A stretch of DNA of 26,628 nucleotides from Salpingoeca rosetta (Eukaryota; Protista; Choanoflagellata). The notes beneath the pieces were generated by a model. It made no database searches. It saw nothing but the letters and a program-made list of their open reading frames with translations, and was not told the origin of the DNA. Every line of letters starts with the position of its first letter. Within the stretch, counting starts at the first letter, position 1. A program made the position numbers and the translations under genes. This document shows, piece after piece, positions 1 to 24,600 of this stretch. The stretch covers positions 641,150 to 667,777 of the forward strand of contig JAWQFM010000034.1 in assembly GCA_033442325.1 (NCBI GenBank), written 5' to 3'.

Positions 1-2
1 AC

Positions 3-1893
3 CTTGCCAGAGAGGCGCGTCGTGCACAGGTGGGTGCCGTTGACGGTGAAACTGCAGTCCAGCTGGTCCACCTCCACCTCAATGTGCATCCACGGGTCGT
101 TCTTGACCATGCCCAGCACGCCAAACCACGCCGCGCCGCTTGCCGCGTCGCCGCCGCTGGGAGCCATGAGCGGGTTCACCAAATCTGTCGCCGCAGTGGC
201 CGCAGCAGTCGCGGCCGCCGCGCTCATGGTGGGTGACGTCGATGCCCCTGGCGTCGGAGACAGCGCAAACGGCGTCTCTGCAGACTCGGCTGCGCCCTCA
301 GGAGGGTTCTGCTCAAACATGTCAAACGCAAGCAATCCCAGCTCGTTCTCCTGGTAGTTGACGCTGGGGTCGCACAGCTCGCTCTCCTTCACATCCACAG
401 GCACGGCGTCGCCATCACCCACATCATACGCGCCAGCGCTGCCGAGACCTGACTCGCCAGGCACCTTGCCGGCACCGGCAGAGGCAGATGTCGAGCTCAG
501 CGGCTGCTGGCCTGCATCACTGCTCTCCGGTGCAGAGTACAGCGGGTTGGGCATCATCGTCACGTCGGATGGGCCGGCCTCCGGCTGGATTTCAAACATG
601 GGGTTGACAAAGCTGAAGTCGCCCTCCTGCGTGCCCAGGTACCCGAGCTCGACGTCGAGCGCAGAGCTCTGATCCAGCACCTCCTGCTGCTCCTTGTTGC
701 GCGTGTACAGGGTGATGATGATGTACCACACAAACATAAACACGATGCACACGCCGCTCACAATGATGGTCAGGTAGAAGGGCCAGTTGCTGTCCGTCAG
801 CGTGCTCTGTCCAAAGTCATCGTCGTCGTTGCCCGTGGTCGGCACAGGCTGCCCCGTGGTCGTCACAACGTTGACCTGGCCGTCACAATAGTCCGACAGC
901 AGGTCGGGCGTGCTGCTTGTGCCGGTCGACGTGCAGTAGTGTGCAAACAGGCAGACGGATGAGCGGTGATGGGCGAGGTCGCGGTACCGCGCAATCTCAC
1001 ACACGCACGCGCCGTGGTAGAACTCCAGCAGCGCGCCAAGCGCAGAGCACTCCGTGGCCAGCTCCCCGTGCAGGAACATGTCATCGCACAGGGCTTCTGC
1101 CTGTCGCTGCAGCGTTGCGGATTCAAACACACAGCCCATCGACGCGCGGAAGAGTAGCGGCGCCGTGGACACGGGGAAGAGGTTCGAGCCGGAAGGATCC
1201 GGGGAACCACCGTCGCTGGGCATGCTCGCCTGTCCACGCAGCCTGCACCGCGTACCATCAACGCCGTACTGGTCAGCCAGCAGCGTGCTGGTGCCGGTCA
1301 GCTGCGCGTTGTCAAAGTTGGTGTGCATGAGCAGACCATCCGAGTAGCCCTGTTGCGGGTAGAAGAAGTTCTGCCCAACCTGGTCTCCGGAGATGGGCCG
1401 GTTCCAGAAGCGCACCTCGTCCATGTGGCCCTCAAAGTCCGTGGTCTCAGTCTCGCGGCGACGGCGTGCCTCCGTTGACGACGGTTGCAGCACGGGGATG
1501 GGCTCGAGGGCACGCCCCAAGGTGAACTCGCCGTCCACGCCAAAGTGGCACGTGCGCAGGAGGCCGACAACCACGTCGGTTGCCACCACCAGCCCGGGTC
1601 GGTGCACCAGCACAAAGAGGCGGCCGTCCGTTGGGCGCCACGTCACCGTGATGTGCGCCCACAGGTTGCGGTACATGATGATGCGTGTCTTGAACACAAA
1701 CGTGCCCCAGGTGATGGTCAAGCGGCCGTCCAGCACGACGCAGTTGAACGTGATGCCGTTGGCGTAGTCCGTGTAGAACGAAAACACGACAAAGTTGCGT
1801 GTGCAGCGCCGCAAGCGGTGTGGGTTCAGCGGCACAACGTAACCACCACCATAGCCATACGTGTAGTCACCCGAGCCAGAGCCGGAGCCGGAG

Positions 1894-1936
<43 letters not shown>

Positions 1937-4900
1937 CAGACCCACTGCCGCTTCCGCTTCCGCTTCCGCTGCCAGTGTTGTCTGCTGCATACTGGTCCAA
2001 GTCGTCATGAACGTTGTCAAAGCCAGGTTTCACCCAGCCCTCTACAGCCAAGCCGCACTCGCCACCATTGCACATGCCTCCACTAGCACCGCCATCACCC
2101 GAACCAGTCCCATCACCACCAGTGCCACCACCACCCGTGCCACCACCCGTGCCATCATCGCCGCCGGACGGCTCGTATGGAACGTCGCCGCAGTCGCGCT
2201 GGGGCACAAAGCTCACAGAGGTCTGGTTGAAGGCAAACATGAAGCCGCCAGAGCCAATGCGGGTCTGGCCAGGATCAAATCGGCCTGGAATCACGTCGTG
2301 GCCAGGCACACCAAAGCGGCGAGGCAGCATCTCATTCAACCATGCCTGCGACAGCACCTCGCTGTCAAATGGCAGCGTTGTCGTCGTCGTTGTCGTTGTG
2401 GTTGTTGAGCTACTCGTTGACGTGAGCAGAGGCGTGGTCGTGGACGTGGCTGTGGTCGTGTTGCCAGCTGAACTTGTTGTGTTCACCGCAGCCGTGGTCG
2501 ATGCAAGCACCGTGCCATTGGTCGCTGGCGTTGCTGCGCTTGTGCTTGGCATTGCCGTTGCGTTGGCGGGGGTAGTTGCGTTCGACAGTGGCGTGGTCGG
2601 CGCTGGCACCGTCGTTGTGATGGCTTCACTGCAGTTGGAGCCCGTGTATGGGAATGCGCAGCTCGAGCAGTTGTCGCCCGTGAAGCGGGCATCGCAGTCG
2701 CACACAAACGCGGTGTTGTTGACCAGACGGCAGTCGCCGTGCCCGCCGCATGTGACCTCGCGCGTGCACGCCTCAACGGCGCAGGTCGGACCGGCCCAGC
2801 CGCGCTGGCACAGGCACTCGCCGACGGGAATGCTCGTGTTGGCCGCAGTACTCATGGTGCCGTTGACGCCCGTCGTGGCGGTGCTGCTGTTGGTGTTGGC
2901 TGTCTCCACGCAGGAGAGGCCATGGCCAGAGCAATCGTCGGGGCAGACAATGTCATCCGTGCAAGTCGCGCCGGTCTTGCCAAACACGCACAGGTCGCAC
3001 GTGGGGCCGGTGAAGCCAGCGTCACACGCGCACACGGCAACATCGCCCTGCGCAACGCACTCACCGTGGCTGCCGCAGCCGGCGCCGCCAGCACACGACA
3101 GCTCAACATGACAGTGGTCGCCACCGTAGCCGCTCACGCACTCACCGCAGGCAGCGCCCAGCGTCGTGTTGGAGCACATGCACACGGGCTGTTCGTTCAC
3201 AACCGCGCACGTGCCGCGAAGCGGGCCGCCGCACTGCGGGCTGCCGGGACAGATGGGCTGGCTGCAGTCTGCGCCTTGGAAGTTGGGGTCGCACAGGCAG
3301 TACGGGTTTGGTGCGTTGGCATAGTCCAGGGCGCACACGCCACGGTTGGAGCAGTCTGGCTCACCGGGGCAGTCGAGGACATCGCACGCCTCGCCGCGCC
3401 GACCCGTTGGGCACTCCCTCCACGTAAACTCCGTCTGCAGCGCTGTGGAGTTGGAGCCGCACAGGCCGTGCATGTTCTCCTGCAGCGACGCGGGAATGTC
3501 CAGGGCCGCGCTCAGCTGCCCGACATACGCCGTCACCGTCACCCGCACGCCGTTGGGCAACGACACCACGAGCTTGTGGCGCGACTGCAGGTACCACTCT
3601 GCCCTCAGCCCGCCGGGCGTGGCAAAGTCTGTCGGGTGCTCGACCGTCTGCATGGCGCCCGTGAGCGCGTCGGAGAAGAGCGCCTCCAGCCGGTTGGCAC
3701 CCGTGTCTGCGAGGTACACGGCCATGCTCTGGCTGTCGTATGACACGCCAATCATGGACGACGACACGCACGTCTCAAACGCCGTGCAGGGGCGGTGGAT
3801 GCTCTGCACGTGCATGGTGTCCGTGCGCACGAGCGTGTACGTGCCGAGGCCGCTGAACTGATACGCCGTACCAGCAAAGCTGGTGAAGTACGGGTCGCCA
3901 AACGCCGTGCACACGACGTTGCCCTCCGTGGTGGAGTTGATAAACAGGTCGGGCGCGGTGGCCACGCTGCAGTCAACACCGGTCCACCCGGGGCTGCACG
4001 ACGAGCACAGGCTGTCGCCGTTCCAGCGCGTCTCGCACATGCACTGCCCCGTGACGGAGTTGCAGCTGCCGTGGCCAGAGCAGGCCACGCCATCCACCAC
4101 ACCCTCGCACAGGGAATCGCACGTAATGCCAAAGTGCACGGCGTCGCACTCGCAGTAGTGGTTGCCGGATTGGTCTGTGGCCTCACGGCCAAACAGGCAC
4201 AGCCTGTCGCAGGTTGGCCCGATCCAATCGGTCTTCAAGCCCTCATTGCACAGCGGCCTTGCAGGCCACTCTGCCAGGTTCAGGTCATCCTCGCACAGCG
4301 TTGCAAATGCAAAGACGCTGACGAGCCCAGACGCGCTGGCGTTGTTGGCTGCACCCTGCTGCAAGCACTGCAACAAGTAGTACTCGGCCGGGTTGGGGAA
4401 CAGCGGCGCACACATGGCCTGCAGCGAGCCAATCCAGCGGTTGCAGTCCGCAAGGAACACCTGCTGCTGCGCGGGCGTGGCGCCGTAGGTTGGCAGCGAC
4501 ACGGGCCACGCGTCCACAAGCGGTGCCGTTGACGTGCTGTTCAGACCACCGCTGCCGCCACTGCCGCCACTGCTGCTTGCACTGCGCCGGCGGCGCTGCA
4601 GCAACTCCTCATCGTAGCCGGAAGCAAACTCGTCCAGAGACACCACCAGCCCAATGTCACGCGCTTCAACGTCGTCCTGCGAGTACACAAAGGTGATGGG
4701 GAGTGGAAGCGTGGAGGCGATCCACGTTGGCGCCTGTCGTGTAAAGAAGAGCAGGGTTGGCCCAACCTGGTCACCGACAACGTCGCCGCTGCCCTCGTCA
4801 AACTTCCACATGCCGGCCAGGTCTGGTGCGTACGGCGGTACGTTCTTCAGGTACGTGGAGGCAACGATGGCCGGGTTGCTGGGCCGCGTCCACAGGCGAA

Positions 4901-7900
4901 GCTCATCCACGTCGCCAACAAACGGAGCAACCGCACCCTGTCCCAGCACGGAGTCGCCAGCCATCCACACGCCAAGCAGCACCTGGCCGCCAGACTCGCA
5001 GGCGCTCGTGCCCACAAACGCAGTGAACACGCCCGATGTGTCGTCCGTCAACAGCCACACCTCAGCGGTGCCCTGGGACCGTGTCCACACGACGCTGAGC
5101 TGGTGCCACTTGTTGATCTGGAACGCCACCTCGGTCGGGTACGCCTCCGAGCCATACGAGACAATCAGCGTGTCAATCTGCCACGAGCCATCCCTGCTCA
5201 GGGCAAACGCGGTGCTGTTAGCAGAGCCAATGGGCGACAGCAGTGCCACCCGCTCGCCCTGGTGCATGCGGTGCTCCAGCACGGTGAAGGCGGCGCCTGC
5301 CAGCGTGCTCACGGTGAGTCGGGCGCCAACGGTGGGCCGCGTGTGCGCGTGCATGAGCCACAGGCCACCCGAGATGCTGAGCCGTGTGAAGGGACCGGAG
5401 TCGCCAAACGACACAGCGAGCGTGTGCAGCTTGCGGTATGCAAAGGCAACGCCGCCAACCTGCTTCGGCTTCACGCTCACCTCAAAGGTCACGGTGTCGC
5501 TGTCGTCAAACACGAGCGGCGACGAAACGAGGCCGCTGTCGTTGAGGCGGAGGGCAAAGCCGGCGTCGGTGGCCGTGGCCGGGCTGCTGCTGGAGAACGC
5601 CTCCATCTCATCCGGCAGGTCTGCCAGCGTCAGGTTTGCAAACGCCAGCGACGAGCCCGCATGGCAGGAACCAAGCAGGCCCTCCGTCCACGCGCAGGTG
5701 GTGGCGCGAGGAGCGCGCAGGAACACTTCCAGGAAGCCCTGGCGCTGCTCAATCACCAGCACGCTGCCCACATCAAACCGCAGCACTACGCTGTCCAACG
5801 ACGTTTGGGTCACGTTGTTGACGCCACTGCTGCCGCCACCACCAATTGGAATGGCAACACCCTCGGAGCGCGTGAGCACGTTGTTCACACGCACCTCAAA
5901 CGCGCCCGCAGCAACATAGGGGCTCACAAGCTGCACCTTGTCCGAACCAAATCGGACTGTCACCTCCGATACACACACTGCGCGGCCCTGCTGGCACGGC
6001 GCCAGCTGCGCGGTGACTTTGGCCAGCTCCTGGCCGCCCGTGTTGACAACACCCGCACGCTGCTGGCTCAGCACCACGCGGCCAGGTGACGGGTAGGCAA
6101 AGGAAATGCCCTCAAACGCATGCACAAGGCCGCCAGTAAAAATACCAGCAGCCACGGAGGCGCCGGCACCGCTGTTGTCGCTGCTGCTGTCGAGACGTGC
6201 AAATTCGCACTTGGCACCCAGCCAGCCCTGCGCACAGACTGAGCAGTCTGCGCCGGTCCACTGGGGATCGCAGGCGCAGGTGCCATCCACGCGACACAGG
6301 CCGTTACCGTTGCACGGCGTGGCTGCACCGCCAGGGCACGCGTCCTTGCACTCCGTGCCATAGTATCCGGGGTCGCACACGCACACGTTGAGATCCTCTG
6401 CAGAGGCGTGGCCGTTGTAGCACAGCTTGTCGCACTTGGTGCCAATGTACAGCGGGAAGTCCATGTCTGCGTAGTCGTTGCAGAAGCTCTGCAGCGGCCA
6501 CGTCTTGAGGCTCAGCACAGACTGGCAGTAGTCCGCGTACGCCACCAACGACGACATGCCTGCCGCCAGCTCGTTGGAGCGCGCAATGTCAGCGAGGCAC
6601 GCCTTGAGGTAGAAGTCAGACGTGGCCTGGCCCAGCAGTCTGCATGGCGTGTTGGCGCGGATGAACAGGCCGCAGCGGAAGTTGGCCAGGTCGTCCAGCT
6701 CTGGCGAGGAAAACTGCACAGCGCCGCCCTCGTCGCTTGGCGGGGCGTCAATGTCCGTGTACGTGAGGAACCAGACGGGGCTCGGCAGCGGCGGCTGCGG
6801 GAACACGAGCGGCGTGGCAGCGGGGCCAAGGTCCTTCGCCACAGCACCAGCGCCGTCGTCAAACTTCCACAGCGACACCAGGTCCACATCCGAGGGCTGC
6901 ACGTTGCGGTGGAAGTTCTGGCGGATGGCCGTTGAGTCGAACAGGGAGTTCTTCTCGAAGATGCGAATCTCGTCCACGCAGCCCACGAACTGCCCGCTGG
7001 CGTGGCTGCTGGTCGCGTATGCGGAGGGCCGCCACTGGCCAAACGAGAGCACGCCACCCGGGCGGAACATCTGGCTTGAGTCTGCAAAGAAGACCGACTT
7101 GGACAGCAGCGTACCTTGCTGCGTGAACATAAACAGGTTGACCACCCCCGTGGTGCGGCTCCACACGAGCGTGATGTGGTTCCACGCGTTGAGCTGCACA
7201 ACAAAGTCTGTCGTCACGACGCGGTCGCCATACACCACCTGCAGCGGGTTGGAGAGCACGACGGAGAAGGTGCGGCCGAACTGCGGCTCCTCGGGCTCGG
7301 GCTCCAGCAGCTGCTCAATCGGGTGAGGCAGACACACGTCGCGCAGCACGCGCTGGTTGATGCCGCTGATGGGCTCCGTGATGTGCGTGTACGACATGAC
7401 CGTGCCGCCGTACCGCTGCGGCTTCACCAAGAACTCAATCATGACAAACTTGCTCTTGAAGGCGTTCACCATGGGCGGCGAGTAGATGCCAGAGTCTGCA
7501 AAGCACACGGCGTACCCGTTGGTCGGGTTGTCAATGGGCTCGTCCAGCCAGTCCTTCTCCAAGATGTCGAGGATGTCCTCCTCATCCAGCTCCGTTGGCG
7601 ACTCGGGCATCCAGTCGTTGGTGCACTGGCTGCCGTCGCCACCGCACACACCGCACTGGTCCACGTAGGACACAAATGTCACGCCACGCAGGCGACACGC
7701 CTGCTCGTACGCCTGCACCACCGCACAGCTGCACGCGCTGCTGCACGCAGCGTAGCTGACGGCACACGCGCGCACGTACGGCTCTGGGTCAACCACGCCG
7801 TGGCACGCGGAGTAGCGCCCGCGCGGGGCAGCGAGCACATCGCAATTCTCGCCATGCTCGCTCGCAGGTGGCTGTGCTGGCAGGCACTGGCGTGACGGCG

Positions 7901-10900
7901 TCGCGGGCGTCTCGGGAACACGCCACGACGAGGCAAGCGCCGTGGTCTGCGTCAGGTTGCCCGTGTCCTGCACCGCTGTGTTGTCGGAGGTGAACAGCAC
8001 CTGCGTGCCGCTGAAATGGCCGCACAGGCCGCACAGGTTGTTGCGGTACGCGGTTGGCGCGTTGACCTCCAGCAGGTCGCCGTTGAAGGTGATGGAGACG
8101 TCAAGCACAAGCAGCTGCACCGTCACCTTCGAGTACACGCGAGACACGCGCACGCGGCTGGTGACAATGGGCAGCGCGTCGTCCTCAACCACCTCGCCGT
8201 TCATGACCACAAGGCCGCCCAGCCGCACGTCCACCGTGACAGCGGGCTCCTGCGTGCTGCCGTCGGAGATGGCGGGCAGGATGACGCGCACCTCATCGGC
8301 AGCGGGGTACGCTGACGTCGATGCGGCTGCCAGGGTCGCGTGCACCTGGAACTCGCTGCCATCGCAGTTGGGGCCGCCAGAGGCCACGACAAACCTGCCG
8401 CGCCCGCAGAAGCTGAAGGGCAGGCCGTCAAACGTGGTCATGTGCGCGCCGTACAAGAGGCAGCTGCTCGTGCCATCCGGCAGGTCATCGTCCCTGCACG
8501 TGGAGCCGTCGCCGCCACACACGCCGCAGCGGTCAATGACGGAGGTGTATGGCACCTGGATGGAATCGCACAGGCTCTCAAAGGCCCGGAACGGGTCGAC
8601 GCATGCTTTGCCAATGTCCTTGGCGTCTGTTGCACAGGCCATGCTCAGGCACGCGCGGTAGAACGGCTCCGGGTCAAGCACGGCGGCACAGGAGCCATAC
8701 ACAGGTGCGGGGCTGTTGAGCAGCGCACTGCACTGCTCCTCTGCGCGGGCACGGTTAGCGGGGAAGGCGACGCAAGGGTCGCGCGGCGGCTCGGGCCCAT
8801 CCGTGCACGTGGTGCTGGCGCTGGTGAGGCGGCGAAGCAGCGGCGGCGTGGCTTGGTTTACACCAAAGCTCCACATGGAGTTGCGGTTGCTCGGCGCAAA
8901 CTCGTCTGCAAGGCCGTTCATGTTCCCGCACAGGCCGCACACGCGCGACTGCAGCGAGCGCGGCACAAACACGCGGAACGTGTTGAAGTGCGACCACTCC
9001 ACATGCACGCCCGTTGCCTGGTGCACAACGCGCAGCACGCCGCTGTCACCGTCGCCTGTGTGGTGCACGGACACGCCGTGCCTGTTCAGGTAGGGCGCTG
9101 TCAGCACGGTGTCGTCTGCCTTGTCGTCAATGTCGTCGCCAGCAAGCGACACAACACCGCCGCCCGTGATGTGCACGAGAGGCGATGCGCCAAAGCGAAC
9201 AGCGAGCACGGGGGTGGCTGGGTCGCTGCCGCGCGTCACCACGGTGATGTCAAACTCGTGTTGCGAGCAGTCACTCACCAGGTTGTACTCGCACTCCCCG
9301 GCAAAGTCGAGGCTCTCGCCATCAAAGGTCACGTAGGACGAGGACGCGAACACGGTGCAGGAGGCCAAGCCATCTGCGCAGGTTGAGTCGTCACCGCCAC
9401 ATACGCCGCACACGTCGCGCGCGGACGAGATGCCCGTGGCTCCGGCAAGCGCACATGCACCCTCGTAGGACGCAATGATGTCGCAGGCATCCAGGAGGGG
9501 GAGGGCGTCCGTGGCGTTGCCAAAGGTGGCGGCCACGGCGCTGGTGGCGTTGTGCGGCCAGGCGGACCACGCACATGCCGCTTCCAGGCATGCCTGGTAG
9601 TATGTCTGTGGAGCGACGGTGGCGTGGCATCCGGCGAGCGAACCGAGCGGGTCGACGAGCACGTGGCACAGTGCTTCGGCGGCGGAAAGCGCGCCGGCGT
9701 TGCCAGCGCACTCGGACGGCGGCAGCACGGTGGCGTTGAAGGTCTGGTTGGTGAACTGCGGGTCGCCAAACGGCGCCAGCAGGCCCGTGTCGTGCACCTG
9801 CCAGCCAAGCACGCTGGTGTAGGACGTGGAATCGTCGCCAATGTGGCCGTTGTTGTTGCCGGCGATGCCGCGCGTGCTCACAAAGAAGCTCTCTGGGGCG
9901 CGCACCCACGCCGTCGCCGCAATCAGGTCAATGTCCATCTCAAACAGGCCCTCGTACAGGCTGACAAACAGGCGAAAAGAGCCGTGAATGTTCCGCAAGT
10001 AGACGGTGAAGCGTAGGCCAGAGAGCCTGTAGCCTACCAGGACGCGGCCGTTGATGCTGACGCGTGTGTGCACGAGGTCAACGTGGATGGTGACCGTGTT
10101 GGAGATGACAATGGCAATGCCGCGGAGGCACGCGGGCGAGTAGCGGCTGCTTGTTGTCGCCCAGGTGCAGGTACCCACGCTGCCGTACACGCGCAAGGGG
10201 TAGCCGTTGTACAGGCTCTCCACCAGCAAGTAGTCGTAGACGTTCGTGCGCCAGATGGTGGCGCCATCAAATGTGCGGTACACCACGCGGCCAGATCCGC
10301 CAAACACGCTAAAGCGGCGCACCGACGGCGCAACGCAGCCCGTCACGGGGCTGCAGTAGCGCCAGGGTGCGCGGCAGTGCCGTTCAAGCACACGAATCAC
10401 AGACCGTGCGGCAGCAGTGGGAGTTGACGCAGCGCACACGCGGCGCAGGCACGACTGGTAGTAGAAGTCGACGTTGACGCCAAACGTGCCGCTGCAGGAC
10501 GCAAAGAGCGTGGTGCGCACAACCGCACAGTAGGACGCGGCCAGCTGGTACGCGTACGCGTTGCCTGCACAGGGGCTCGTGGGCAGCGGCGGAAGCACGC
10601 ACACGGCGCTGGCAGACGCCGTGAACAGCGCGGCCTGGAACTCGCTCTGCAGTGCACCCGCAACCGCGGTGGTGTCAGCAGACGCGGCCAGACCACACGC
10701 ACCGCACAGGCGATCTCGGTACGAGGGCGCAATAAAGAGCTCGTGGTGAGTGCCGTACCACGTGAACACCACTTGCTGGTTCACGCCCACCACCTCGATG
10801 CGGCCGTTGAGGTTGCGGACGAGCGTCTCCTGCTGGTCGACGACCGTCCAGCCGCCCGTCAGGAACGCGCCGTCAACGTCCACGGTCATGTTTGCGTGCA

Positions 10901-13816
10901 GGCTGATGACGGAGGCATACGCGCCGCCAAAGCGCAGGGCAACGCGCGTGCCAGAGCTCACAGCCAGCGACTGGATCTCAAAGTCGCTGCCGACGCAGTC
11001 GCGTGCGATGGTGATGGCGCAGCTGCCGCTGTCCACGGCCAGGAAGCGACCCGCGGTGGAAGCGTGGTACCGCCCAAACAGGGACGTGCACCGCGGCCAG
11101 GTCGGCCGGCAGCTCGTCCCGTCACCAAACAGCACGCCGCACTCATCCACGGGGATGGGCCACGTCGTGTGCGGCGAGGGGCACGTATTGTACACGAGCC
11201 TGACCACCTGCGAGAAGCAAACGTCCTCCGCAGACTGCGAGCACTCGCACATGTGTCGCAGGCAGTACTGGGTGATCATGGTCCGACGATAGCCCGAGCC
11301 CACACACCCAGCAAGTGGGTGCGTTGACTGCAGAAGCGTGCCGCACGTGGCCTGCACGGAAGCAAGCCGCGGGGCGTCTCCTTCACACACGGCCGTACTC
11401 GGCGGCGATCCCCGTTCCACACACACATCATCGACCTTCCACACCTGCCCGTCCGACCACTGCTGCTGCGGGTCCTCCGCCAGCGTGGAGGGCTGGCCCA
11501 TGGGCTGCTCGCCACACAGCCCGCCAGCGACGGCGAGGCGCGATGCATCCACGCGGACGGAGAGAATCGGGTCCGTCCACACAATCTCCAGCGCCCCGCT
11601 GTAGTGTGTGAATGTCCAGCGGCCCCCGCGGTTGACGAGGGGCGTGCTCACCACGCCGGGCAGGAACAGGCTCCGGTCCAAGGACGGCTGGGTGAAGCCG
11701 CTCGTGTCCACAGGTGCGCCACGCACAAACCTGACGGGCTGGTTGTTGGACGACTGGACCACAAATGTGTCCGCCTCCACAACCACAGTCACGTTGTGGC
11801 CACTGTCGGCATCCGACACCACCACCACCTCGTGCGCGCACGTGTACCTGTGGTGCCCAAGGTGGCCATCAAAGCGGAAGAAGAGGCCGCCCTCCAGAGC
11901 AAGGCACTCGTCCGGCTCCGTCGACGACAGCGGGCAGGACCGACCGTCGCCAAAGCACACGCCGCAATCATCACGCGCAGACACAATCGGGTGACCGGCC
12001 CGGTCGCACTGGTCCTCAAACACGGCAAGCGCCCTGCAGATGAGTGGCGACGATGGATCCGTGCACGCCTCCTCCACGCACATGTTGTAGAGCGGCTCTG
12101 CGTCCAGGTGCGTCAGGCAGCCGCCGTACGGCCCGGAAAACTGGCGCAGGCGTCCGCACACGCTGTCCACCAGGTCCTGGTCCACACACGTGGTGGGTGG
12201 CTGCGGGGCGGTGGGGATGACATCGCACTCGCCAAGCTGCCAGGCCTGCACAAAGGGGGTGAGCGAGTCTGCAGACGCGGGCGTGCCGTCGGCATAGGCC
12301 CAGTCGTTGGACGACTGCCCGTCAATGTTGGCGCCACACAGGCCGCACACGGCATCGGCGTATTGACCTGGCGGCACGTTGACGCTGTAGCTGTCAAAGT
12401 CAGTGAAGACAACCTGCACGTGGGAGCCACCGAGCTCGAGGGTGAGCGCGCCCGTGCTTTCATCCGCGCTGAGCACTGACTCGTCGGCCAGCACAATGGG
12501 GAACCGTGCAACGGGGATGCGGTTCACCACCGCAGTCCGGGGGGCAACCAACTCCACGTCAACGCCCTTTGCTGTCGTCACACGGACACGGTCGCCCTCG
12601 CGTGCCACCTCAAAGTCGCCGTTGACGCAATCGCGCGCCAGCACATAGCTGCAGTCGCCAGACTCAAACGCATACAAGCGGCTGTCGTACGTCAGAATGT
12701 ACTTGTTGCCCAGGGCAGAGCAGCTGGACCGCTCCACCTCCAACGTGCATTCGCCGGTCACAGCATCACACGACTCGCACGACGGCACGGGCAGCTCGTT
12801 CATCAGGCCCTGCGCCGCACACTGCTGCTGGTAGGCGGCAATAGCAGCGCAGCCACAGCGCAGCTCGGCAAAGCACGTGCAGAACGAGCGCACGCAGGCG
12901 TGGTACGCCGTCATGGGATCAATTTCGGCGTGGCAGGAGGCGAACGGCCCGTTGACGTCCGTGACGAGGCCACAGTAGTCCTCCGCCTGCGATTGCACCT
13001 GCGCAATGTCGCAGTTGTCCGTGGGGTCGGACGGGTCGTCGGGGCAGCGGGAGTTGCGGTCGTGGAAGATGCGGTCGCTGGGGTCCTGGTCCACGGCATA
13101 GCTGATGCCAAGCTGGTAGTTGCTCGAGGCAAGTTCCGTGGAACTGCCGCTCAGCAGCGCATCGTCCAAGGCCTGCTTGTTGAAGTTGCCGCACAGCCCG
13201 GTCATGTTGCGACCATACACGGGCGGCACGGAGACCTGCAGCAGGTTGCCGTAGTCCCACTCAATCACCACCGACTCGGAGAACAGGGCCATGCGCACCC
13301 TGCCGGCGTGAGCCTCCAGGTGAAGCGCGCCCCGCACCAGCGGCAAGGCCGTGATCTCCGTGCCGTCTGCACTCACCACGGCGCCAGCACTCACCTCAAT
13401 CTTGGGGGCGCCAAGGGCCCGCAGGGCAATGCCTGCCGTGCACCTGGCAAAGTTGTTGAAGGAGCAGCGCGTGTGCCGCACCTGCAGCTCCCAGGGCCCG
13501 ACCGGCACCTCGTTGATGACGTCCGGGCTGGAGAAGGCGGAGCGGGCCACCGTGTAGTCGCACAGGCCCATAAAGTCGTACTCGTAGCCGTCAAACGTCA
13601 CGTAGTACGCGTTACCGGAGATGGAGCAGGTGGCGCGGGCGCCGGAGTAAGGACAGGACGTGCCGTTGCCGAAGCACACGCCACACCGGTCCACAATGCC
13701 GCCAGCGACCGTCACGCCACGCGCAGCGCACTCGCCCACCACATCCTTCAGCACACCGCAGGCGGAAATCCCGTCAACTGCGCCCAGAGTGGTGGTGTCT
13801 CCACCGCTACCAATTG

Positions 13817-13851
<35 letters not shown>

Positions 13852-15679
13852 GTGGTGGTGCTGGAGCCAGCACGCAGAGAGAGGAGAAGCTCAGCACACT
13901 TGTCTGCGATGCACATCTCGTAATACACGGCCGTTTCGATGCCGCATTGGTCAAAGCTGCCACCCACGAGCACACTGCAATACTGCTCCGCGTTTGCGCG
14001 CAGACCGCTGTTGCCCAGGCAAGGGTCAACAGGCGGTTGCGGGGGAGGAATGACGGGGCCAACGAGTGAAGAGCAGTTGTGCTCGACAGAGGGCTCAAAG
14101 GCAAACACGCCAGACATGTCCTGGGTCCATGCCCAGCTCTCGTTCCAGAGCATGCCGTACGGCGCGGGCTGCTGCGCGGTGAGCAGCTCTCTCACGGGGG
14201 CGCCGTCCACAGCGACGCTGCACAGGCCGTCCAGGCCAGACCCGCTCGTCACAATGTCGCGCGCCACAGAAACCACGAGCGAGTTCACCTCGTAGTTCCA
14301 CAGCAGCGACGAGCCAACGGCGTCCAGCACAACCCTGACTGTCTTGGCGGTCTCATCTTGGTACACGGCCAGTCTGCTCTCGGGCGAGAACAGCGTCTGC
14401 ACGAGGGGGGAGCCATCGAACAGCACACTCGCTGCTGCTGATGCGTCGCCGCCTGTGTCGTCCCCGCGCACCAGGGAGAGGCGGTGGCGGTTGCGGATGG
14501 AGACGGCCGCAACGACCTGGCCCGCATTGCGCGTTGTGAAGATGGACCAGCGCTGTTCCACGCTGCGCGCAAGCACGAAGCTGCACGCACCGGGAAAATC
14601 GGCATTGAGCCCGTCCACGGTGAGGAGGTAGCGCGAGTTGAGCAGCCTGCACGTCATGGGGTCACGCGGTGCGTGGCAGCGTGGCGCGGCTGCGGCAATG
14701 GTCAACACACCCGCAGCACGACAGGCGGCCTCGTACTGCGAAACAGCGGCATCGCACCAGGAATTCGAGTCGTCGGGACGTGCACACTTTGCCGTGCGGC
14801 AGAGCTCAATGTACGGCGCAACGTCGACGACTGCATGGCACGCGGAATACTCGCGACCACGCAACGTCTTGGAGCACACGCGGTCGGCCCAGTCGGCGAG
14901 GGTGGCGTTGAAGGAGCATGGATCGGCCGGGGGAACGTCATCAATGGTGCAGAACGGGTCTGGGTCGACAAACAGGCTCGCAGCCTCCGTGTCCACGAGC
15001 CAGCTCTTGGCGTGCTGCCACAGGCTGGCGGCCACAACGCCATTGGACGTGATCAGGCCACTCGCGGGATCGTCGTTGTTTGTGGCGTCGGCGCTCAGCG
15101 GCTGTCCACACAGGCCACACACGCGGTTGGCAAAGGTGACAGCTGGCGCACGCACCTGAAGCTGGCCAGACGCTGGTGCCCACGTGACTGTGACGCTGTT
15201 GGGCAGGCGCACAGTGAAAACACCAGCGCCCTTCTGCACAACGACACCCTCCACGGTGGTGAGTGGCAGCGCGGAGGTCTCCTGGCCGTTGATGGTGACA
15301 AAGGAGCCCGCAATCTCCACGACGAGGTTGAAGCCGAAGCGCACCGCGACGACCGAGTTGCACGAGCTCAGGCCACACGCCGTCTTGCGCGCTTGCACCT
15401 CAAACTCAGACATGGCCGAACAGTCCTTGGCAACCACGTAGTCGCAGATGCCGGAAAACGCATTTTCGTAGCCAGAGAACGTGCGAACAAGGCCAACGTC
15501 GCGCATGAAGCACGTCATAAAAGAGCCCGAGCACGTGCTGCCGTCACCAAAGCACACCCCACACTCATCGACGATGGCCGGGATGGACGTCACACCGCTC
15601 CGCACACACTGGTCACGGTAAGCCTGCACAACCTCACATGTTGAAGGCGGTATGGGTGTTGCAACTGTTGATGTAGAAC
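3..15679 (-). CDS. Segment 4 (~5,200 aa, absent from ORF track): VWD13-21 array, [LamG-C8-EGF-VWD]x2, EGF cluster, stalk, LamG-C8, TM, cytoplasmic tail
   Basis: Hand translation at many points in the same frame as segment 1 gives coherent protein (TCEVVQAYRDQC...DECGVCFGDGSTC; VYRTFDG; WNHITLVW; VDEIRIF; CPGEPDCSNRGVC; TM). The track lists no stop-terminated minus ORF in this frame below 15590, consistent with one open frame running off the window. Not every codon was checked. Confidence 0.88.
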
Positions 15680-18600
15680 CAGACACACGGCATCTCGACA
15701 GCTTGAAATGAAGTCTGTTGGGTCGACCGTCTCCAAGCATGTGGCGAGCGGTCCTTGTGCATCTGCAAGTGCAAAACACCGCGGCGGAACCGGCGGCGGT
15801 AGCGGCGGTTCAACCACGGGTGTGATGGGCGGAATGGCGGTTGTGCTCGTTGCATTGTCACTCGTGCGATCCCGGAGCCGATCACCAGCCTTTTGACGCG
15901 ACAGCCACGCTTCGATGACAGCCCAGGCGGCATCAAGATCACCCGTTGCGCACACGTCCTTGACGCACTCCTGCGCCATGTCGCCGGCAGCGGCACACAC
16001 CATCACCGCCTGTGCCTCAAAGTCAGCGGATACGCATTCATCCGAAGGCGTGTAGCCATCTGGGAGCTTGTTGTAATCATCCCAGTTGTTGGGAGGGTCG
16101 TACCAGAACAGTGACTGGGCACGTGTGACGCGGGTGTAGTCGATGGTGGCGTGATCATCTGCGGAGATGCCGTTGTACAGTGCGCACAGGCCACCAGTCA
16201 CGTTGTAAAACAGCGGCGACACCGCAACGTGGATGTTCAAATACCTTGAACTGAAGGTCTGCGCCGTGAGCTCAAAGTCCAGCGCCTCGGAGTACAGCGT
16301 GCACGAGCGGCCATATTCACAATGTACATCGACACCATCAACAACTGTGCTGTACGTGGATGATGCACTCGTGAGTTCCGCAGCGAGGCTGTTGTAGGTG
16401 CGCACGATGAGGCGTCCAGAGCGCGGGTACATGCCCACGCGCAGGCCAGACTCGCGGAACAGCGCCTCAAAGGCCGTGTTGCCCGAAGCGCTGCCGAGCG
16501 GCTCGTGTCGCACCTGCACCTCCACCAGCGGCGACCGCAGCAGGTAGAACTCGCCCACGCCGTAGAAGTCGAAGCGCGCGCCATCGAAGGTGGTGAAGTG
16601 CGGGTCGCCCGCGCTTGTGCACAGGCCGCCACGTGAGGAGTCGACTGGCGGCTGCACGGGCGGGCGAGGATCGATCATCGGGGTGATTGGCTCGCTCGGC
16701 ACTGTCGTTGGAGCCGCCGTCGTGCTGGGGGAGGTAGTGGCGTTCCCGCTCGTGCGATCCGCAGGCGGTCCTCGGCCTCCTGGCGCGACCTCCACGCCTC
16801 AATCATGAGCCACGCCGCGTCCAGGTCACCCGTGGCACACACGTCCTTGATGCACTCCTGCGCCATGTCGCCGGCAGCGGCACACACCGTCACTGCCTGC
16901 GCCTCAAGCTCCGCAGACTGGCACTCGTCCGAGGGCTTGTACCCATCAGGCTGGTCGTTGTAGTTATCCCAGTTGTTGGGAGGATCGTACCAAAGAAGCG
17001 ACTCGGCACGTGTGACGCGGGTGTAGTCGACGGTGGCGCTGTCGTCTGCAGCGATGCCGTTGTACAGGGCGCACAGGCCGCCGGTTGCGTTGTTGAAGAG
17101 CGGCGACACCGCAACGTGGATGTTGAGGTAGCGCGAGCCCTGCGCCGTGAGCTCAAAGTCCAGCGCCTCGGAGTACAGCGTGCACGAGCGGCCATATTCA
17201 CAATGTACATCGACACCATCAACAACTGTGCTGTACGTGGATGATGCACTCGTGAGTTCCGCAGCGAGGCTGTTGTAGGTGCGCACGATGAGGCGTCCAG
17301 AGCGCGGGTACATGCCCACGCGCAGGCCAGACTCGCGGAACAGCGCCTCAAAGGCCGTGTTGCCCGAAGCGCTGCCGAGCGGCTCGTGCCGCACCTGCAC
17401 CTCCACCAGCGGCGAGCGCAGCAGGTAGAACTCGCCCACGCCGTAGAAGTCGAAGCGCGCGCCATCGAAGGTGGTGAAGTGCGGGTCGCCCGCGCTTGTG
17501 CACAGGCCGCCACGTGAGGAGTCGACTGGCGGCTGCACGGGCGGGCGAGGATCGATCACCGGGGTGATTGGCTCGCTCGGCACTGTCGTCGGGGTCGTTG
17601 TCGTGGTTGTTTGTGGGCCACCGCCGGGGCCACTGTCAAAGCACGCTGTCTCGGATCCTCCAGGGATCAGGCGAAGTTCGGGCGCAACTGCTGTTGCGTT
17701 CTTGAGCGCTGCCACGCTCGCAGCGTCCGTGAGCACGGCACCACACAATCCTTCAAGTCCGGTCGTCGTCTGAGCTGGAACATCCACCTTCACCGTTGCT
17801 GTTGCCCTCAGCGCCCTCAGCCAAGTGACACGCATGCCATTGGCCTGCATCTCCAGCGCGTACGTGTCGCTCGCCGCCTGAGTGTGCTGCCGTCGCTGAA
17901 AAGCACAAACACGTCAGACACTGGACGGCCGCCGACAAACACGCCCTGTTCACTGAACACGATCGTGGTGCGGTAGTTGAGGCGGGCGGCCACGAACGTC
18001 GTGCGCGTGCTGACGCAAGGGTCGCCGTCACGTGGCACACACACAAACCGGGCGTGCACCTCAAAGACGCCATGTGGGTCCTTAGCCAGCACAAAGTCAC
18101 ATTCGGCAAGCGGTTTCACAATCGCGCCTGGCACAGACAGGACTTGCCCGCTGGAGAGCACGGTGCAAGTCGGGAACTGCTCTGCGCAGGAAGTACCGTC
18201 GCCGCCACACACGCCACAGCGGTCCCATGCCAGGAAACGCACATACTCGTTGTTTGCGTCACAGTACTCCAAGAATGACGCTGCGCCCTCGCACTGTGAA
18301 TACGCGCGGCCGGACGTGAGGGCTTGGCACGCGTCACGCAAGCAGGCGTCGTACAGAGATGAGACGAGTGAGTCAGAGCATGTGGCCGAATCAGCGACTG
18401 CGCCTGGGCTGAGGACACACAGGCGCTTTGCTTCTGCCAAGGCGGACGAATCGAGGTTGCACGGGTTTGGTGGAGGCTGCACGGGGCTGATGCATTCGCT
18501 GTTGTGCGAGCCGAGAAGCGCCGTTCCGGCCTGCACCTGCCAGCTGTTGGCGAAAAGGTATGTTCGCGCCGTGTTGATGATGGTGTACACCTGTCCATCG

Positions 18601-21600
18601 GCCGTCTTGAAGTCGTCAATCGCAGAGCCAGTAAAGTCGCCGCACAGGCCACACATGCGGCCATGCAGGGTTGGCGGTGCCATGACCTGGATGATGGAGC
18701 CGCGCGCACGAACCTGCACCTGATTCAGCATCTCAATGACCAGGGTGTCGTCCACGAGCCAGGTAAGAGTCGTGCCGTCCTTGTAGAGAACGAGCGAGGA
18801 CTCGGAACGGGAGACGCGCGCGTTGTCAATGTACACCGCACCGTTGCGCAACTCAACCAAGTGCCGGCCCTGTGTGCGCAAGGCTAATGCATACGTTGCC
18901 AGGACGGGGTTGGGAATGATTTGCACCTCAAACGAGCTTTCCTCGCAGTCCTTTGCCAAAATGTACGAGCACGTGCCGGCGTAATCGTACGCACTGCCGT
19001 CAAAGGTGACAAAGTGCGCGCCACCGAGTGTGGAGCAGGTTGCGAGTTCTTGCGCGCAGGAGGAGCCGTCGCCAAACGCAACCCCGCAGCGGTCAATGAT
19101 GGGCGGCTGCGGCGCGCGCCCGCGGTCCTTGCACAGCACGTCGTACTGGCGAATCGCCGACGTGGCGTGCAGCGGGTAGCACATGTCAGCAAGACATGCC
19201 TCATAAAACGGCTCAGGGTTGAGCAAAGAGTGGCAGGAAGCAAATGGGCCGTCTGTGTCCACAATGACGGCGCAGCGGCGGCGGCCTTCCTCAATGACCT
19301 GCGCATCTGCGTCAGCGCATGGGTCAACGGGCGTTGGCGGCACGGGCTCATGGTAGCACACGCCCTCCCTCGAAGCAAACAGCGTCGACGGCGCGGACGT
19401 GACGTTGACCACGGCCCAGCTCAGCCCAAACTTGTACGCGTTTGTGGTGAGCACACCGGCGCTGGTGACGAGGTCGTTGGAGGTGACGTTGTCGTACTTG
19501 CCGACAAGACCACACACGCGGTTGGAGAAGCGGTCCGGGACCCACACGGAGAGGATAGCGTCCTCAGTGTACTCAATCTCAATACCGTTGCTCATGGTCA
19601 CAACCAGGGTGCCCTGCAGGGTGCGGGTCACGGTGGTGCCGCCCCTGAGCAGCAGCGGAAGCTTGGTCTGCAGCTGGCCGTCCACAAGCACATCACCAGT
19701 GAACTGCAACTCCACGACCGGCGATCCGTGTGACGTGATGCCAACGCCAAAAGTGGAAATGCCGGCGTTGGTCACGTTGCGGTTACGCACGTGGATCTCA
19801 AACTCGTTGTACAGGCAGTCCTTGGCAAACACGTAGTCACACGTGCCGGAGAAGCTAAACACAGTTTTGTCCAGGGTCACGTAGTGGGGGTCACCAAACA
19901 CGGTGGACACGCTGTACGTCTCCAGGCACGACTCGCCGTTGCCAAAGCACAAGCCACAGCGGTCAATGACGCTGCTTGCCTCCACGGGGTCTGGGCTGCT
20001 CTTGAGGCAGCGATCCTCGTAGGCAGCGTACACGCCACACGCCTTCTCGGCGCCGCCGGTGCAGTAGTCGCTGATGCACGCATCAACGTACGCGGACGGG
20101 CTGGCCCAGACGTGGCAGGCGGCATACGGGCCGACGTCGCTGGCTAGTGCGGCGCAGTAGTCCTCGGCCAGCGCCTGTAGCGTGGCGTTGTTGAGACAGG
20201 GACTGTCGCGCTCCAACACACGCGGCGAGCACATGGCGCCGGAAGGGCCAAGGAAGAGCGCGTCGGTCTCGGGCGAGTGCCAGGTAAGGCCGGCCTGCTC
20301 GAAGGTGCACGTGCCGTTGACGGTGCACCCGGGCACGTTGCTGCCGTACGTGCTGACGTCGTCCAGGGCGGTGTTGCACAGGCCGCACAGGACGCTGGAG
20401 AGACGCACGTGCGCGCTGATGGCGGTCTGGCCCGAGAACGGGTTCCACGAAACAACCAAGCCCTCGCGCTGGGCGGTGACAATGAGGTCAAAGCCGTCGC
20501 TGCGCACGACAATGCCGCCATCCAGCACGCTCGGCACCTCGGTGACCTCAATGCCGTCGAGGAACACGCGCGGGCCGTCCAGCTCCAGCGCCTGCTCGCC
20601 AATGCGCACAAGCAGGCGCGTAAACGCGTCCGAGCCCTCGGGCTTGTAGCCGTGGATGGCAAACGAGCCGTGGGCGCAGTCCTCGGCCAGCACGTACGAG
20701 CACTGGCCGTGGAACGTCTGCAGGTCGTTGGAGACGGTGGCCACGTGGGAGCCGAGCACGGCGCACTGGAGGTTGGAGGAGGCGCACGTGGACCCGTCAC
20801 CGAAGCACACGCCGCACTCGTCCAGCACCGTCTCGATGGCAGTGAAGCCAGACTCAATGCACAGGTCCTCCAGCGCCGTGATGCTGGCGCACGCAGCAGC
20901 TGCGATTGCCGCATCGACGCTGTTTGTGATCTCATCGCCGGGATTTGCTGCCAGCGCCGTGGCGTTGCCAATGGCGATGCAGTAGTCGTACACGCACGAT
21001 GCAAACAATGTTTGGCTCTGCATGCCGACTTCGCCCACGCATGAGGCGTACGGGCCAGCGGTGTCGCGCAGCACGTGGCAGTAGTGTTGGGCCACCAGCA
21101 GCAGTTCCGGCGAGGAGTCGCACGGGTTGCTCGGGCGCGGCTCGACAGCGACGGTTTCGTTTGCAGATGCGCACTGCTGTGGGGCGGCCCAAGCTGTGCC
21201 GTAGCTCCAGGCAGCCGTGACGTTGTCCGAAGCAACACTAACATTGGCGGTGGCGCCCGGCAGGCGGAGCCCCTCTGCAGAGCCGCAGAGGCCACAGGAG
21301 CGTGACAGCAGGGACGCGTGGGCGTGAACGGCGACAGCACCGCGGCCATCGGACGAGACGCTCAGGAACGGCACGGAAACGGACAGGCCCTCCGATGTGA
21401 CGTCGATCAACAGGCCGCCGCCAGCCGCGGAGCGGTAGGGAAAGCTGACCACGAAGCCAGCCTTATCGCGGGCAAGCCCACTGACAAAGAGGACCTCATC
21501 GCCGCGGGACAGGATGGCGCTGGCGCTGACGCGGGCACCGTTGACGAGGACGCGCGTCTCTTGGAGCAGCGGCGCGACAGCCTGACGCGTCGAGTTGAGG

Positions 21601-24600
21601 AGCGTGGCTAGAACCCAGTCTGCACGGACACGGTCCAGCTCAGCCGGTACGGTCATAGTGCTGGGCAGGATTTCAAGCCACGTTGTTGGCCGTTGCGGAT
21701 CTGGTGTCATCTCAACCCGCACGGTGGGCGCGTCCTGGCCACAGCGCTGCAGGTACACGGCAAAGGCTCCAAACTGGCAGTCACGCAGGAGGGCATATGC
21801 CTGCTCGCCCGCAAACAGGAACGGGTCCGCAGCGAAGGGCTGAACGAAGGAAGCGCCATGCAGCGAGCACGAGCGCCACTCCTGTGCACAGGCGGAGCCG
21901 TCGCCAAAGCACACACCACAGGCGTCTCTGACAGAGCCGAGATCCGGCACAAGCTGTGCACACGCGCGCTCGTACTCCGACACAGCGGCGCAGGCAAGGC
22001 CCTGCCGCCAGGTATCAACGGCATCCGCCGGGATACTGGGAGGTGCCGCGGCGCAGAAGGCGCTCAGGCACGAGCGATAGTACGCGGCTGGGTCGAGCAC
22101 GGCAAGGCACGGGCCGAGCGAACCGCCAGGGGCGGTCATGCGGTCGCAGTACGCCTCAGCAGCCGCACGGGTGGTGCTTGTTGCGGTGTCGCACGGGTGG
22201 GTGGTGGTTGCAGGTGGGGCAACGCAGGCTTCATCTGGAGGCTGAAGCGCAGAATCTGGGCGCACCGTCACCTGCCGTGTTGAGGAAGACGAAGCGTCAC
22301 CGCTATCGCCGCTCACATCCGCAACATCAAGCAGTGAGGACACACCGAGGGACGCGGGCCAGCACATGCCGACGATGTTGGCGGTGCTGGCGGTGCTGGT
22401 GTGTATGCGCACACTGGTTGCACCAGCAGAGATGGAGATGCCAAACGCCGGCACCACAAGCGTAACCAGCGACGCGGACGAGCGGAACAGGCGTGTGTCA
22501 TCTGAGGGGTTGACAATGTGCACGGGGTCCGTGGGCGCAAACGCTCTTGAGAGTGGCTGGCCATCGGCATCACCAGACGCCTCGTGGCTCACGACCGTGC
22601 CGTCGCTGTGAATCTCAAGATGCCAGCCGTTGTGGCGAGCAATCGCCAGCACATACGCGCCAGACGCCTGGCGTTTGACCGTGACCATGAAGCTGCGTGG
22701 GTCCTCGCGGTCGCCCACGAGCAGCAACTCACAGCCCGTTGCCGTGCTCAGCAGCGAATCGGCCGCAAAGGGAACAAGCGTGTGGGTGTCGAGCAGGCTG
22801 CACTGGAGCTGATCCTGGGGCCCACAGTCCTCGCCGGTGCCATAGCACACGCCGCATCGATCCCGCACAGAGGACACGTTGTACAGCAGCCCACCAGATC
22901 GGGCAGCACATGCCCGCTCGTACAGGGTGAGCAGCTGACACGCCTCCCGCCTTGCCTCTGCTTGGCTTTCGGCGAAACAGGCGCGGGCAACGCACAGGTT
23001 ATGATAGGCTGCTGGCTCCTCCAGCGAGAAGCAGCTGTCCTTGTACGGGCTGACCTCTGACACGGGGTCAAGGTCAGCACACAGCATCGCAGCAGAGGTG
23101 CATGACGTGTTGGCCGGGGGAGGGAGCACCACAGGGTCCTCGGGAACAGAGCAACCACCGGTGACAGATGAGGCCAGGAGCTGCGAGGCCCCGGCAGCGT
23201 CCAGTAGCGTTGTGCTTCCACACGCGGCGGCGTTGCCTGCGACAACGGCGCTGGTTGCCATCACGCGCACCATGGAGGTAGAGGACGCAGCAACGGCCAC
23301 CACAACGCGAGCAAGCACGCCCACGGGCTGCCTGATAAAGTCGGTGTTGTTTGAGTACCTCTCAGTCCCGGGTGCACTGCCGCTGTATACGGTAAGCAGC
23401 AGCTCCGTCGAAGTGCGCTCCAGCAGAGCGTGCTGCAACCTGACAGGGAAGCCCGTGGTCGTGCGGCCGTTCACCACGGCAACGTTGGGCTGCCGTGGAT
23501 CAAGTGTGAAGGCAGCACTCGTGTGGGACGCCGTGTGGTTCACGACCATGTGCACCACGCCAACGACTGGCGACACGGACACGGAAACACCTGCAGCACG
23601 CAGCAGGGTCAGGTCACACACATCGTTCTGCTCGCCAAGCGCGAGCGCGGTGCGATCGGAGGTGGCATCAGGGCGGAAGGTCAGCAGGGACGCCTGCGTC
23701 GCCGAGCACTCGTTGGGCAGGCTGCAGCTCGTGCCGTCACCGCGGCACACGCCGCAGCGATCAAACACCGAGGCAGCACCGCGCACACCTGCGGAGAAGC
23801 AGAGCGCCTCCACGTTGCCGAGGAAGCCGCACGCCGTCTCACGTGCCAGGGCAGGGGTGGAGGCCAGGCACACGCGGGCAACGCACGACGCGTACGCCCT
23901 GTTGAGGTCAAGCGCCTGCTCGCAGGGGGCGTACTGACCAGACGCGAGCACCTGACACTCCAGCTGTGCGCGCATCGCAGCCTCAGGGCTGGCACACCCT
24001 GGTGCCGGGTCTTCCGGCCCGGTGCACGTCGTCTGCTGGAACAGCACGCTGTCACCCAAACGCTGCTGGCTGGCCACGACGCTTTGTGGGAGATCACCAT
24101 CGCCCGCGAGCTCGCTCGCAGTGCACAATCCAGTCACGTTGAGGCTCACCGAGGTCCTTGGACCAGGGCTGTTGAGAAGTGAGTCTCCAGCATGCAACAG
24201 CACGTTGGTGTCCATGCGAACAATGTCCCTGTGCACGGACAGTGACCAGCCAGTTTGTGCAGAGATGCGTCCCTTGACGAGGCCATGAAGCAGCGTGACC
24301 GCCGTCGGCGAGGTGAGCACCAGCTGCCCAAAGCCAGCGCTGGCACCGACACGCATGGGCCAGGTGGAAGCGCCGGTGTCCAGCGCCGTTCCGTTCACCC
24401 AGACACCAACGGCGCCATCGTCACCCACGCGCAGCTCAACGACAGCACCCGAATCATCAGACACAGCGAGACCGCGCCCGCCCTCCTGGAACTGCACAAC
24501 AATGCTGGATGAGCTCACGGACGTGACGTTCTTCGATGTGGTCGTGTTTCCAACTGTTTGTTCGACCGTCGTCACTTGTGTCTCGACGCGAGAGACACGC

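Follow-up and report, generated by a model that had tools for sequence, protein, structure and literature searches.

A slippage-generated Ser-Gly tract in a LamG loop of a giant Salpingoeca rosetta membrane protein as a candidate glycosaminoglycan attachment site

We investigated a Ser-Gly repeat encoded in a 26,628-nucleotide stretch of the genome of the choanoflagellate Salpingoeca rosetta (assembly GCA_033442325.1, contig JAWQFM010000034.1, positions 641,150 to 667,777), the whole of which we call the window and to which coordinates without a prefix refer. The repeat, G(SG)17, is best explained as a real, slippage-generated insert, predicted to be disordered, in the membrane-proximal LamG domain of a giant, probably type I protein. 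Judged by its sequence, this LamG-loop tract is a plausible and testable candidate for a glycosaminoglycan (GAG) attachment site, one among several in the genome, and we regard it as quite possible, if short of probable, that some of its 17 serines may carry a GAG chain. The tract and its immediate surroundings comprise the following features.

1869..1973, minus strand: the G(SG)17 tract with its 17 Ser-Gly sequons (translation and Tandem Repeats Finder)
1974..2021, minus strand: acidic N-terminal loop flank, FDNVHDDLDQYAADNT (translation and alignment)
1821..1868, minus strand: C-terminal loop flank, DYTYGYGGGYVVPLNP (translation and alignment)
1320..2051, minus strand: second LamG domain, a Laminin_G_3 beta-sandwich (Pfam, AlphaFold2, Foldseek and family alignment)

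The tract occupies amino acids 4613-4647 of a stop-free frame spanning 3..15809, and the minus-strand translation around it, ...GWVKPG-FDNVHDDLDQYAADNT-G(SG)17-DYTYGYGGG..., is identical to that reported in the first-pass annotation, which had read the repeat and its flanks (1830-2020) as following directly on WVKPG. Tandem Repeats Finder resolved the underlying DNA into two hexamer microsatellites, GAGCCA x12 (95% match, 1873-1944) and CCGCTT x3.8 (100% match, 1948-1970), which appear on the coding strand as an (AGC GGA)-type block and then a (TCT GGC)-type block. Serine is thereby encoded by TCT nine times, AGC four times, TCC twice and AGT and TCG once each, and glycine by GGC thirteen times, GGA three times and GGG and GGT once each. 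The annotation had taken this mixture of codons as a sign of selection at the protein level, a claim that held only in part: since the mix comes mostly from two near-pure slippage blocks, the mixed-codon argument is weakened, but the seven bases that deviate from the pure hexamers all lie at third codon positions and are all synonymous (P ~2e-4, given 30% synonymous among random substitutions, or ~2.5e-3 if they represent five independent events).

The placement of the tract inside a LamG loop, also proposed in the annotation, was upheld by the family alignment, AlphaFold2, Foldseek and the match to Laminin_G_3, which put it directly after the W-x-K strand, in the long loop between the strands GLAVEGWVK and RNFVVFSFY of the second LamG domain. 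Pfam scored the part after the tract (1203-1829) as Laminin_G_3 with 28.2 bits against a cut-off of 27.6, and with the tract included the score was 27.1 bits, just below that cut-off; the alignment covers the C-terminal half of the profile only. We also modelled a 293-amino-acid piece, in which the tract forms residues 37-71, with AlphaFold2 from a homologue alignment of 19 sequences. The model reached a pTM of 0.70, with pLDDT above 90 in the strands of the sandwich and below 50 at residues 36-78, and the loop that holds the tract is thus predicted to be disordered. Foldseek matched the model to 54 PDB chains at E <= 0.001 (best E ~1e-5, TM by target ~0.4-0.56), among them the neurexin LNS2 domain, the pentraxins CRP, SAP and PTX3, and the LG domains of laminin, agrin and perlecan. 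In the 19-sequence family alignment, most members have 0-25 residues in the loop after the F/W-T-x-E-x-W-x-K strand; this loop measures ~80 residues in S. rosetta and its closest relative, with 57% identity, and ~45 in the next, with 39% identity.

We then examined these relatives, which were obtained by an exhaustive profile-free protein search that returned 102 proteins; ~40 short matches were discarded as unrelated SG-rich proteins aligned on the repeat only. The best match (P0001, 57% identity) is a 937-amino-acid gene model from marine metagenome assemblies that begins just after the tract. Upstream of it, in the same frame, contig L033 encodes ...EGWCKPGFGNVHDNVDGGTSGG-(SG)7(SGG)7-SGS-DYTYGYGGG..., and another three assemblies (L034-L036) begin within this S/G tract. 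This relative therefore carries at the same position an insert made entirely of Ser and Gly, in which every Ser is followed by Gly and which is built from hexamer and nonamer units. The second relative (P0002, 39% identity, from a JGI metagenome) retains the anchors of the loop (GFDN-HD ... YGY-G..P) and its acidic character; the start of the acidic flank (GF-N-HD) and the YGY-G..P anchor of the C-terminal flank are conserved in both. Conservation in orthologs, which the annotation had put forward as a check, thus gave a divided answer, with an S/G tract of another unit in the 57% relative but a loop devoid of it in the 39% relative.

The C-terminal LamG module of the homologues shares 20-57% identity with that of S. 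rosetta, and the more distant ones with short loops include an uncharacterised Ptychodera flava protein (XP_070533132.1, P0005, 6778 amino acids) and a Salpingoeca macrocollata transcript (P0003). Since the former is an acorn worm homologue of the LamG module, the family is common to choanoflagellates and at least one animal lineage. Scanning of metagenome contigs with the family alignment yielded no further relative, and a word-based protein search added nothing either, giving P0001 alone for candidates of 342-1088 amino acids and no relative for those of 2898-9220 amino acids.

The rarity of such tracts was assessed by scanning the 55.4-Mb genome for pure TCNGGN x6 and AGYGGN x6, which were used because the pattern WSNGGN was too degenerate and returned mostly TG-rich microsatellites. 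We detected four loci with the former pattern and eight with the latter, counts that leave aside mixed-codon tracts, which escape both patterns. The other 11 loci have 6-9 units each, and the one with 9 units sits in a short, non-coding-looking frame, so that the LamG-loop tract, with its 12+5 units, is the longest detectable with these patterns. The LamG-loop SG tract is more than chance. Two further Ser-Gly sites of the genome were noted in open frames. At G000:C2:2426800-2429800 (+), the Cys-rich part of a 433-amino-acid frame precedes ...TTTTTVPNE-(SG)6-DTTT..., after which comes a repeated Thr-rich unit; this Ser-Gly site, too, looks extracellular and is flanked by acidic residues at either end. 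At G000:C22:565400-568400 (-), a 980-amino-acid frame contains (SG)7 directly behind the strongly acidic run ...SDSESVDDSDS, a flank that resembles the classic GAG consensus.

We next considered how the tract compares with known sites of GAG attachment. The xylosyltransferases XT1 and XT2 place xylose on Ser-Gly sequons in unstructured regions, where GAG sites invariably lie; tandem sequons can be fully modified, and chondroitin sulfate (CS) is the default chain (PMC10570366). Furthermore, GSG is preferred over SG, attachment is promoted by acidic residues at -4/-3, and every mapped CS site falls within a disordered or low-complexity region (PMC10424144). In the tract, all 17 serines stand in the preferred G-S-G context, and the AlphaFold2 prediction places them in an unstructured region. 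The N-terminal flank has five Asp in 20 residues, and the first Ser has an Asp at -4, the last one at +2. In addition, because the tract lies N-terminal to the sole membrane helix and among Cys-rich EGF and VWD modules, it should be extracellular; this order of modules would expose it outside the cell or to the Golgi lumen. Xylosylation of the tract and the type of its chain are what we infer from here on. Once slippage had inserted a disordered Ser-Gly run into a surface loop of the LamG domain nearest the membrane, some of the 17 sequons would receive xylose in the Golgi from the XT1-like GT14 enzyme, most easily at the serines adjoining the acidic N-terminal flank. Assembly of the linker tetrasaccharide and then, by default, polymerisation of chondroitin (sulfate) would follow, and the protein would end up with a polyanionic brush a few hundred residues away from the membrane.

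The enzymes for such a modification were sought by an exon-wise six-frame Pfam search of the genome. As a result, the xylosyltransferase and chondroitin synthase genes that the annotation had suggested looking for were indeed present, as XT1-like GT14 exons and two CHGN (chondroitin synthase / GalNAcT family) loci, together with one GT43 gene; eight loci matched Glyco_transf_7C, two of which are the CHGN genes. The GT14 family ("Branch") gave nothing at the default threshold, and then a 16-bit exon at G000:C10:1337588-1337692. This exon is part of a multi-exon gene (G000:C10:1336088-1339192, minus strand; exons ~1336100-1337700), and a stop-free piece of it has human xylosyltransferase 1 as its sole match among solved structures (E 3.8e-16), with three colinear stretches that include the motifs SHG..N.RFIRKQG and GGSDWF. 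The introns of this gene are packed with (GT)n/(CA)n repeats, and at its left end, where the C-terminal (Xylo_C) part would lie, the locus reads N. The claim that S. rosetta makes chondroitin sulfate is borne out by the literature, since the organism produces chondroitin and chondroitin-6-sulfate, and the chondroitinase EroS induces its mating; modification of S. rosetta proteoglycans was proposed as the trigger, with no core protein named (10.1101/139022). The linker and CS synthesis genes were also reported to be expressed in S. rosetta (10.1101/211789).

Several observations weigh against GAG attachment at the tract. Its DNA consists of two near-pure hexamer microsatellites, for whose origin and length slippage alone can account, and the finding that all deviations are synonymous carries a bias, since it was as a perfect SG run that the tract came to notice. 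Among the homologues, no part of the LamG domain varies more than this loop: the repeat is absent from the 39% relative and from the ~16 more distant homologues in the alignment, whose loops measure 0 to ~45 residues. The acidic flanks invoked in the annotation do exist at the ends of the tract, but the inner ~13 serines are far from them and have no acidic residue within five positions. Known GAG sites are mostly found in the linkers that separate domains, whereas this loop is part of a folded one, and that the choanoflagellate XT-like enzyme would accept such a site is putative. Finally, Xylo_C and GT31 (B3GALT6-type) gave no match in the exon-wise search, in which the controls found both families in no genome.

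The hexamer arrays and the absence of the repeat from all but the closest relative also speak for a near-neutral coding microsatellite that expanded in a permissive, long acidic surface loop and serves as a flexible spacer at most, with no glycan, an explanation that we consider a serious one, if somewhat less likely than GAG attachment. Like coding microsatellites in disordered loops generally, the tract is a near-perfect hexanucleotide array whose unit and length are changed in the nearest relative, where the hexamer and nonamer units point to ongoing turnover, and the same gene contains a poly-Ser (13815-13868), a poly-Thr (2376-2423) and a G/D/T run (2088-2168). Moreover, since the downstream membrane anchor forces an in-frame length, the keeping of the frame is no sign of selection on Ser-Gly. 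The tract differs from a plain coding microsatellite, however, in that its seven deviations from the pure repeats are all synonymous and that both its sequence and its cellular context match a known modification signal. An S/G-only tract has also been retained at this position despite 43% divergence between the proteins, and that of S. rosetta is the longest of its kind detectable in the genome. Moreover, 17 disordered sequons outside the cell would hardly escape modification in an organism that has CS and an XT1-like enzyme (PMC10570366).

It is unlikely, in our view, that the serines bear instead some other O-glycan, whether mucin-type, another short O-linked sugar or unextended xylose, with the tract forming part of a mucin-like stalk. 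Only ~130 residues upstream, the protein has mucin-like Thr-rich stretches and N-x-S/T sequons in a Ser/Thr-rich region, several Glyco_transf_7C loci exist besides the CHGN genes, and GT31, needed for the canonical linker, was not detected, in a search whose control likewise found the family in no genome. Gly-flanked Ser without Pro or Thr, however, fits known mucin-type sites poorly. Ser-Gly is also the preferred XT site (PMC10570366, PMC10424144). That the tract is absent from the protein, as an assembly artefact or an intron spliced from the mRNA, is extremely improbable. When the Logan contigs of four public runs were compared with window positions 1-6000, those of all four broke at 1866-1980, so that the length of the tract is that given by the assembly, and its presence in mRNA is presumed. 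Nevertheless, the tract is in frame within a 15.8-kb stop-free frame, contigs enter the repeat from both sides, none of the four runs, including those guessed to be RNA, has a joint that skips it, and four independent metagenome assemblies of the relative have an S/G tract at the same codon position. The intron reading was accordingly rejected, on the in-frame position, the absence of a skipping joint and the S/G tract in the relative.

The same run contigs provided further observations. In the runs guessed to be RNA ("RNA?"), contigs cover only ~1-3000, which fits a 3'-biased RNA library, though such gaps prove nothing. A joint 836>2878 was taken as spurious, since its sides are only 21 letters. 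Differences from the window that change an amino acid, such as V>A, T>S, L>V, S>G and G>S, occur at 1378, 1522, 1562, 2073, 2084, 2126, 2648, 3566 and 3941, and eight further differences are silent; allelic or strain variation is thus found right beside the tract.

The tract belongs to a gene of exceptional size. The stop-free minus-strand frame runs from 15809 down to 3 (5269 codons), and the gene continues upstream in three more minus-strand frames that reach 26627. Since the frames are continuous across the window, one giant gene fills it, with its start beyond the window and a protein of >8,000 codons within these 26.6 kb; no paralogue was found in the S. rosetta genome, and the gene is single-copy. 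The open frames overlap at 15593-16798, 16678-17913 and 17820-26627 (minus strand), and the three frame changes represent introns or frameshifts between VWD units. The remaining features of the encoded protein, from the N-terminal side, are listed below.

6501..26627, minus strand: ~20 VWD-C8 units (Pfam)
4800..5300, minus strand: first Laminin_G_3 domain of the giant protein (Pfam)
2424..6500, minus strand: EGF and teneurin-type EGF modules with a single VWD domain, placed after the VWD-C8 arrays and before the second LamG domain (Pfam)
2376..2423, minus strand: Thr-rich mucin-like stretch, T10 and its neighbours (translation)
2088..2168, minus strand: Gly/Asp/Thr-rich linker just N-terminal to the LamG domain, with a G-S-G-D site (translation and repeats)
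705..785, minus strand: single predicted membrane helix, WPFYLTIIV...IIITLY (read from the sequence)
3..704, minus strand: cytoplasmic tail, incomplete at the window edge (translation)

At the place equivalent to the tract loop, the first LamG domain has only a short loop. The Thr stretch lies within a Ser/Thr-rich region that bears several N-x-S/T sequons. The linker at 2088-2168 is a second candidate attachment region, and the 57% relative (L033:~231-330) has an S/G/T-rich linker with several SG sites there. The poly-Ser run at 13815-13868 (minus strand), in the VWD-C8 region, is a GCT trinucleotide microsatellite that encodes a Ser-rich stretch with nine consecutive Ser. Between the second LamG domain and the membrane helix lies a Cys-containing juxtamembrane region, and since the helix, which was read from the sequence without a topology predictor, is followed by basic residues, a type I topology is implied. 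The tail contains NPMF (594-605) and NPLY (537-548) on the minus strand, akin to the NPxY/NPxF motifs that serve sorting and adaptor binding in the tails of integrin beta and the LDL receptor; in the relative P0001, the tail runs ~300 amino acids beyond the point at which that of S. rosetta ends at the window edge.

We also compared the protein with known systems. The serglycin likeness proposed in the annotation was confirmed for the repeat but not as homology: both proteins have an uninterrupted Ser-Gly dipeptide run with acidic flanks, but a Pfam scan of 1203-2201 with E up to 10 gave Laminin_G_3 only and thus no homology to serglycin. In serglycin, a small secretory-granule protein, the Ser-Gly repeat forms the core and is densely substituted with GAG chains, whereas in S. 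rosetta it is a loop insert in the LamG domain of a membrane protein. Neurexins (heparan sulfate), CSPG4/NG2 (CS), perlecan domain V and agrin, which are surface or matrix proteins with LamG/LNS and EGF modules and with GAG chains near LamG, are probably the nearest analogues in function, and neurexin and CSPG4 share with the S. rosetta protein the type I membrane topology, predicted in the latter. However, the mapped GAG serines of neurexin, CSPG4, perlecan and agrin lie in linkers or stalks and not inside a LamG loop, the identity of the S. rosetta LamG domain to LG domains of the neurexin/laminin/agrin/perlecan type is only 10-18% (Foldseek), and the N-terminal VWD-C8 arrays have no counterpart in animal LamG/EGF proteoglycans.

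In its tandem VWD-C8 units, of which it has ~20, and its mucin-like Thr-rich stretches, the protein instead resembles FCGBP, zonadhesin, the gel-forming mucins and tectorin/otogelin; unlike these, it ends in EGF-LamG-EGF-LamG, a membrane helix and an NPxY-type tail. Its giant homologues from Ptychodera flava, Salpingoeca macrocollata and metagenomes share the C-terminal LamG, but an S/G tract occurs only in the 57% relative, and the Ptychodera flava protein has almost no loop at the tract position.

These comparisons bear on the action of EroS. It is very unlikely, though conceivable, that the giant VWD/EGF/LamG protein is itself a CS proteoglycan and the physiological EroS target, such that trimming of its chains would unmask or change a LamG/EGF adhesive surface and trigger swarming and mating. 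If true, this would represent a pre-animal, GAG-gated adhesion receptor whose chains are attached not to a linker but within a folded domain. Whatever its role, a candidate core protein makes the question of the proteoglycan target of EroS testable, the core protein being unnamed in the literature searched, and the present candidate has the merits of being single-copy and membrane-anchored and of containing, as far as detectable, the longest Ser-Gly run in the genome. If the GAG reading is refuted, the tract would be a clean case of a coding microsatellite tolerated in a LamG loop; if it is confirmed, LamG/EGF membrane proteoglycans would predate animals.

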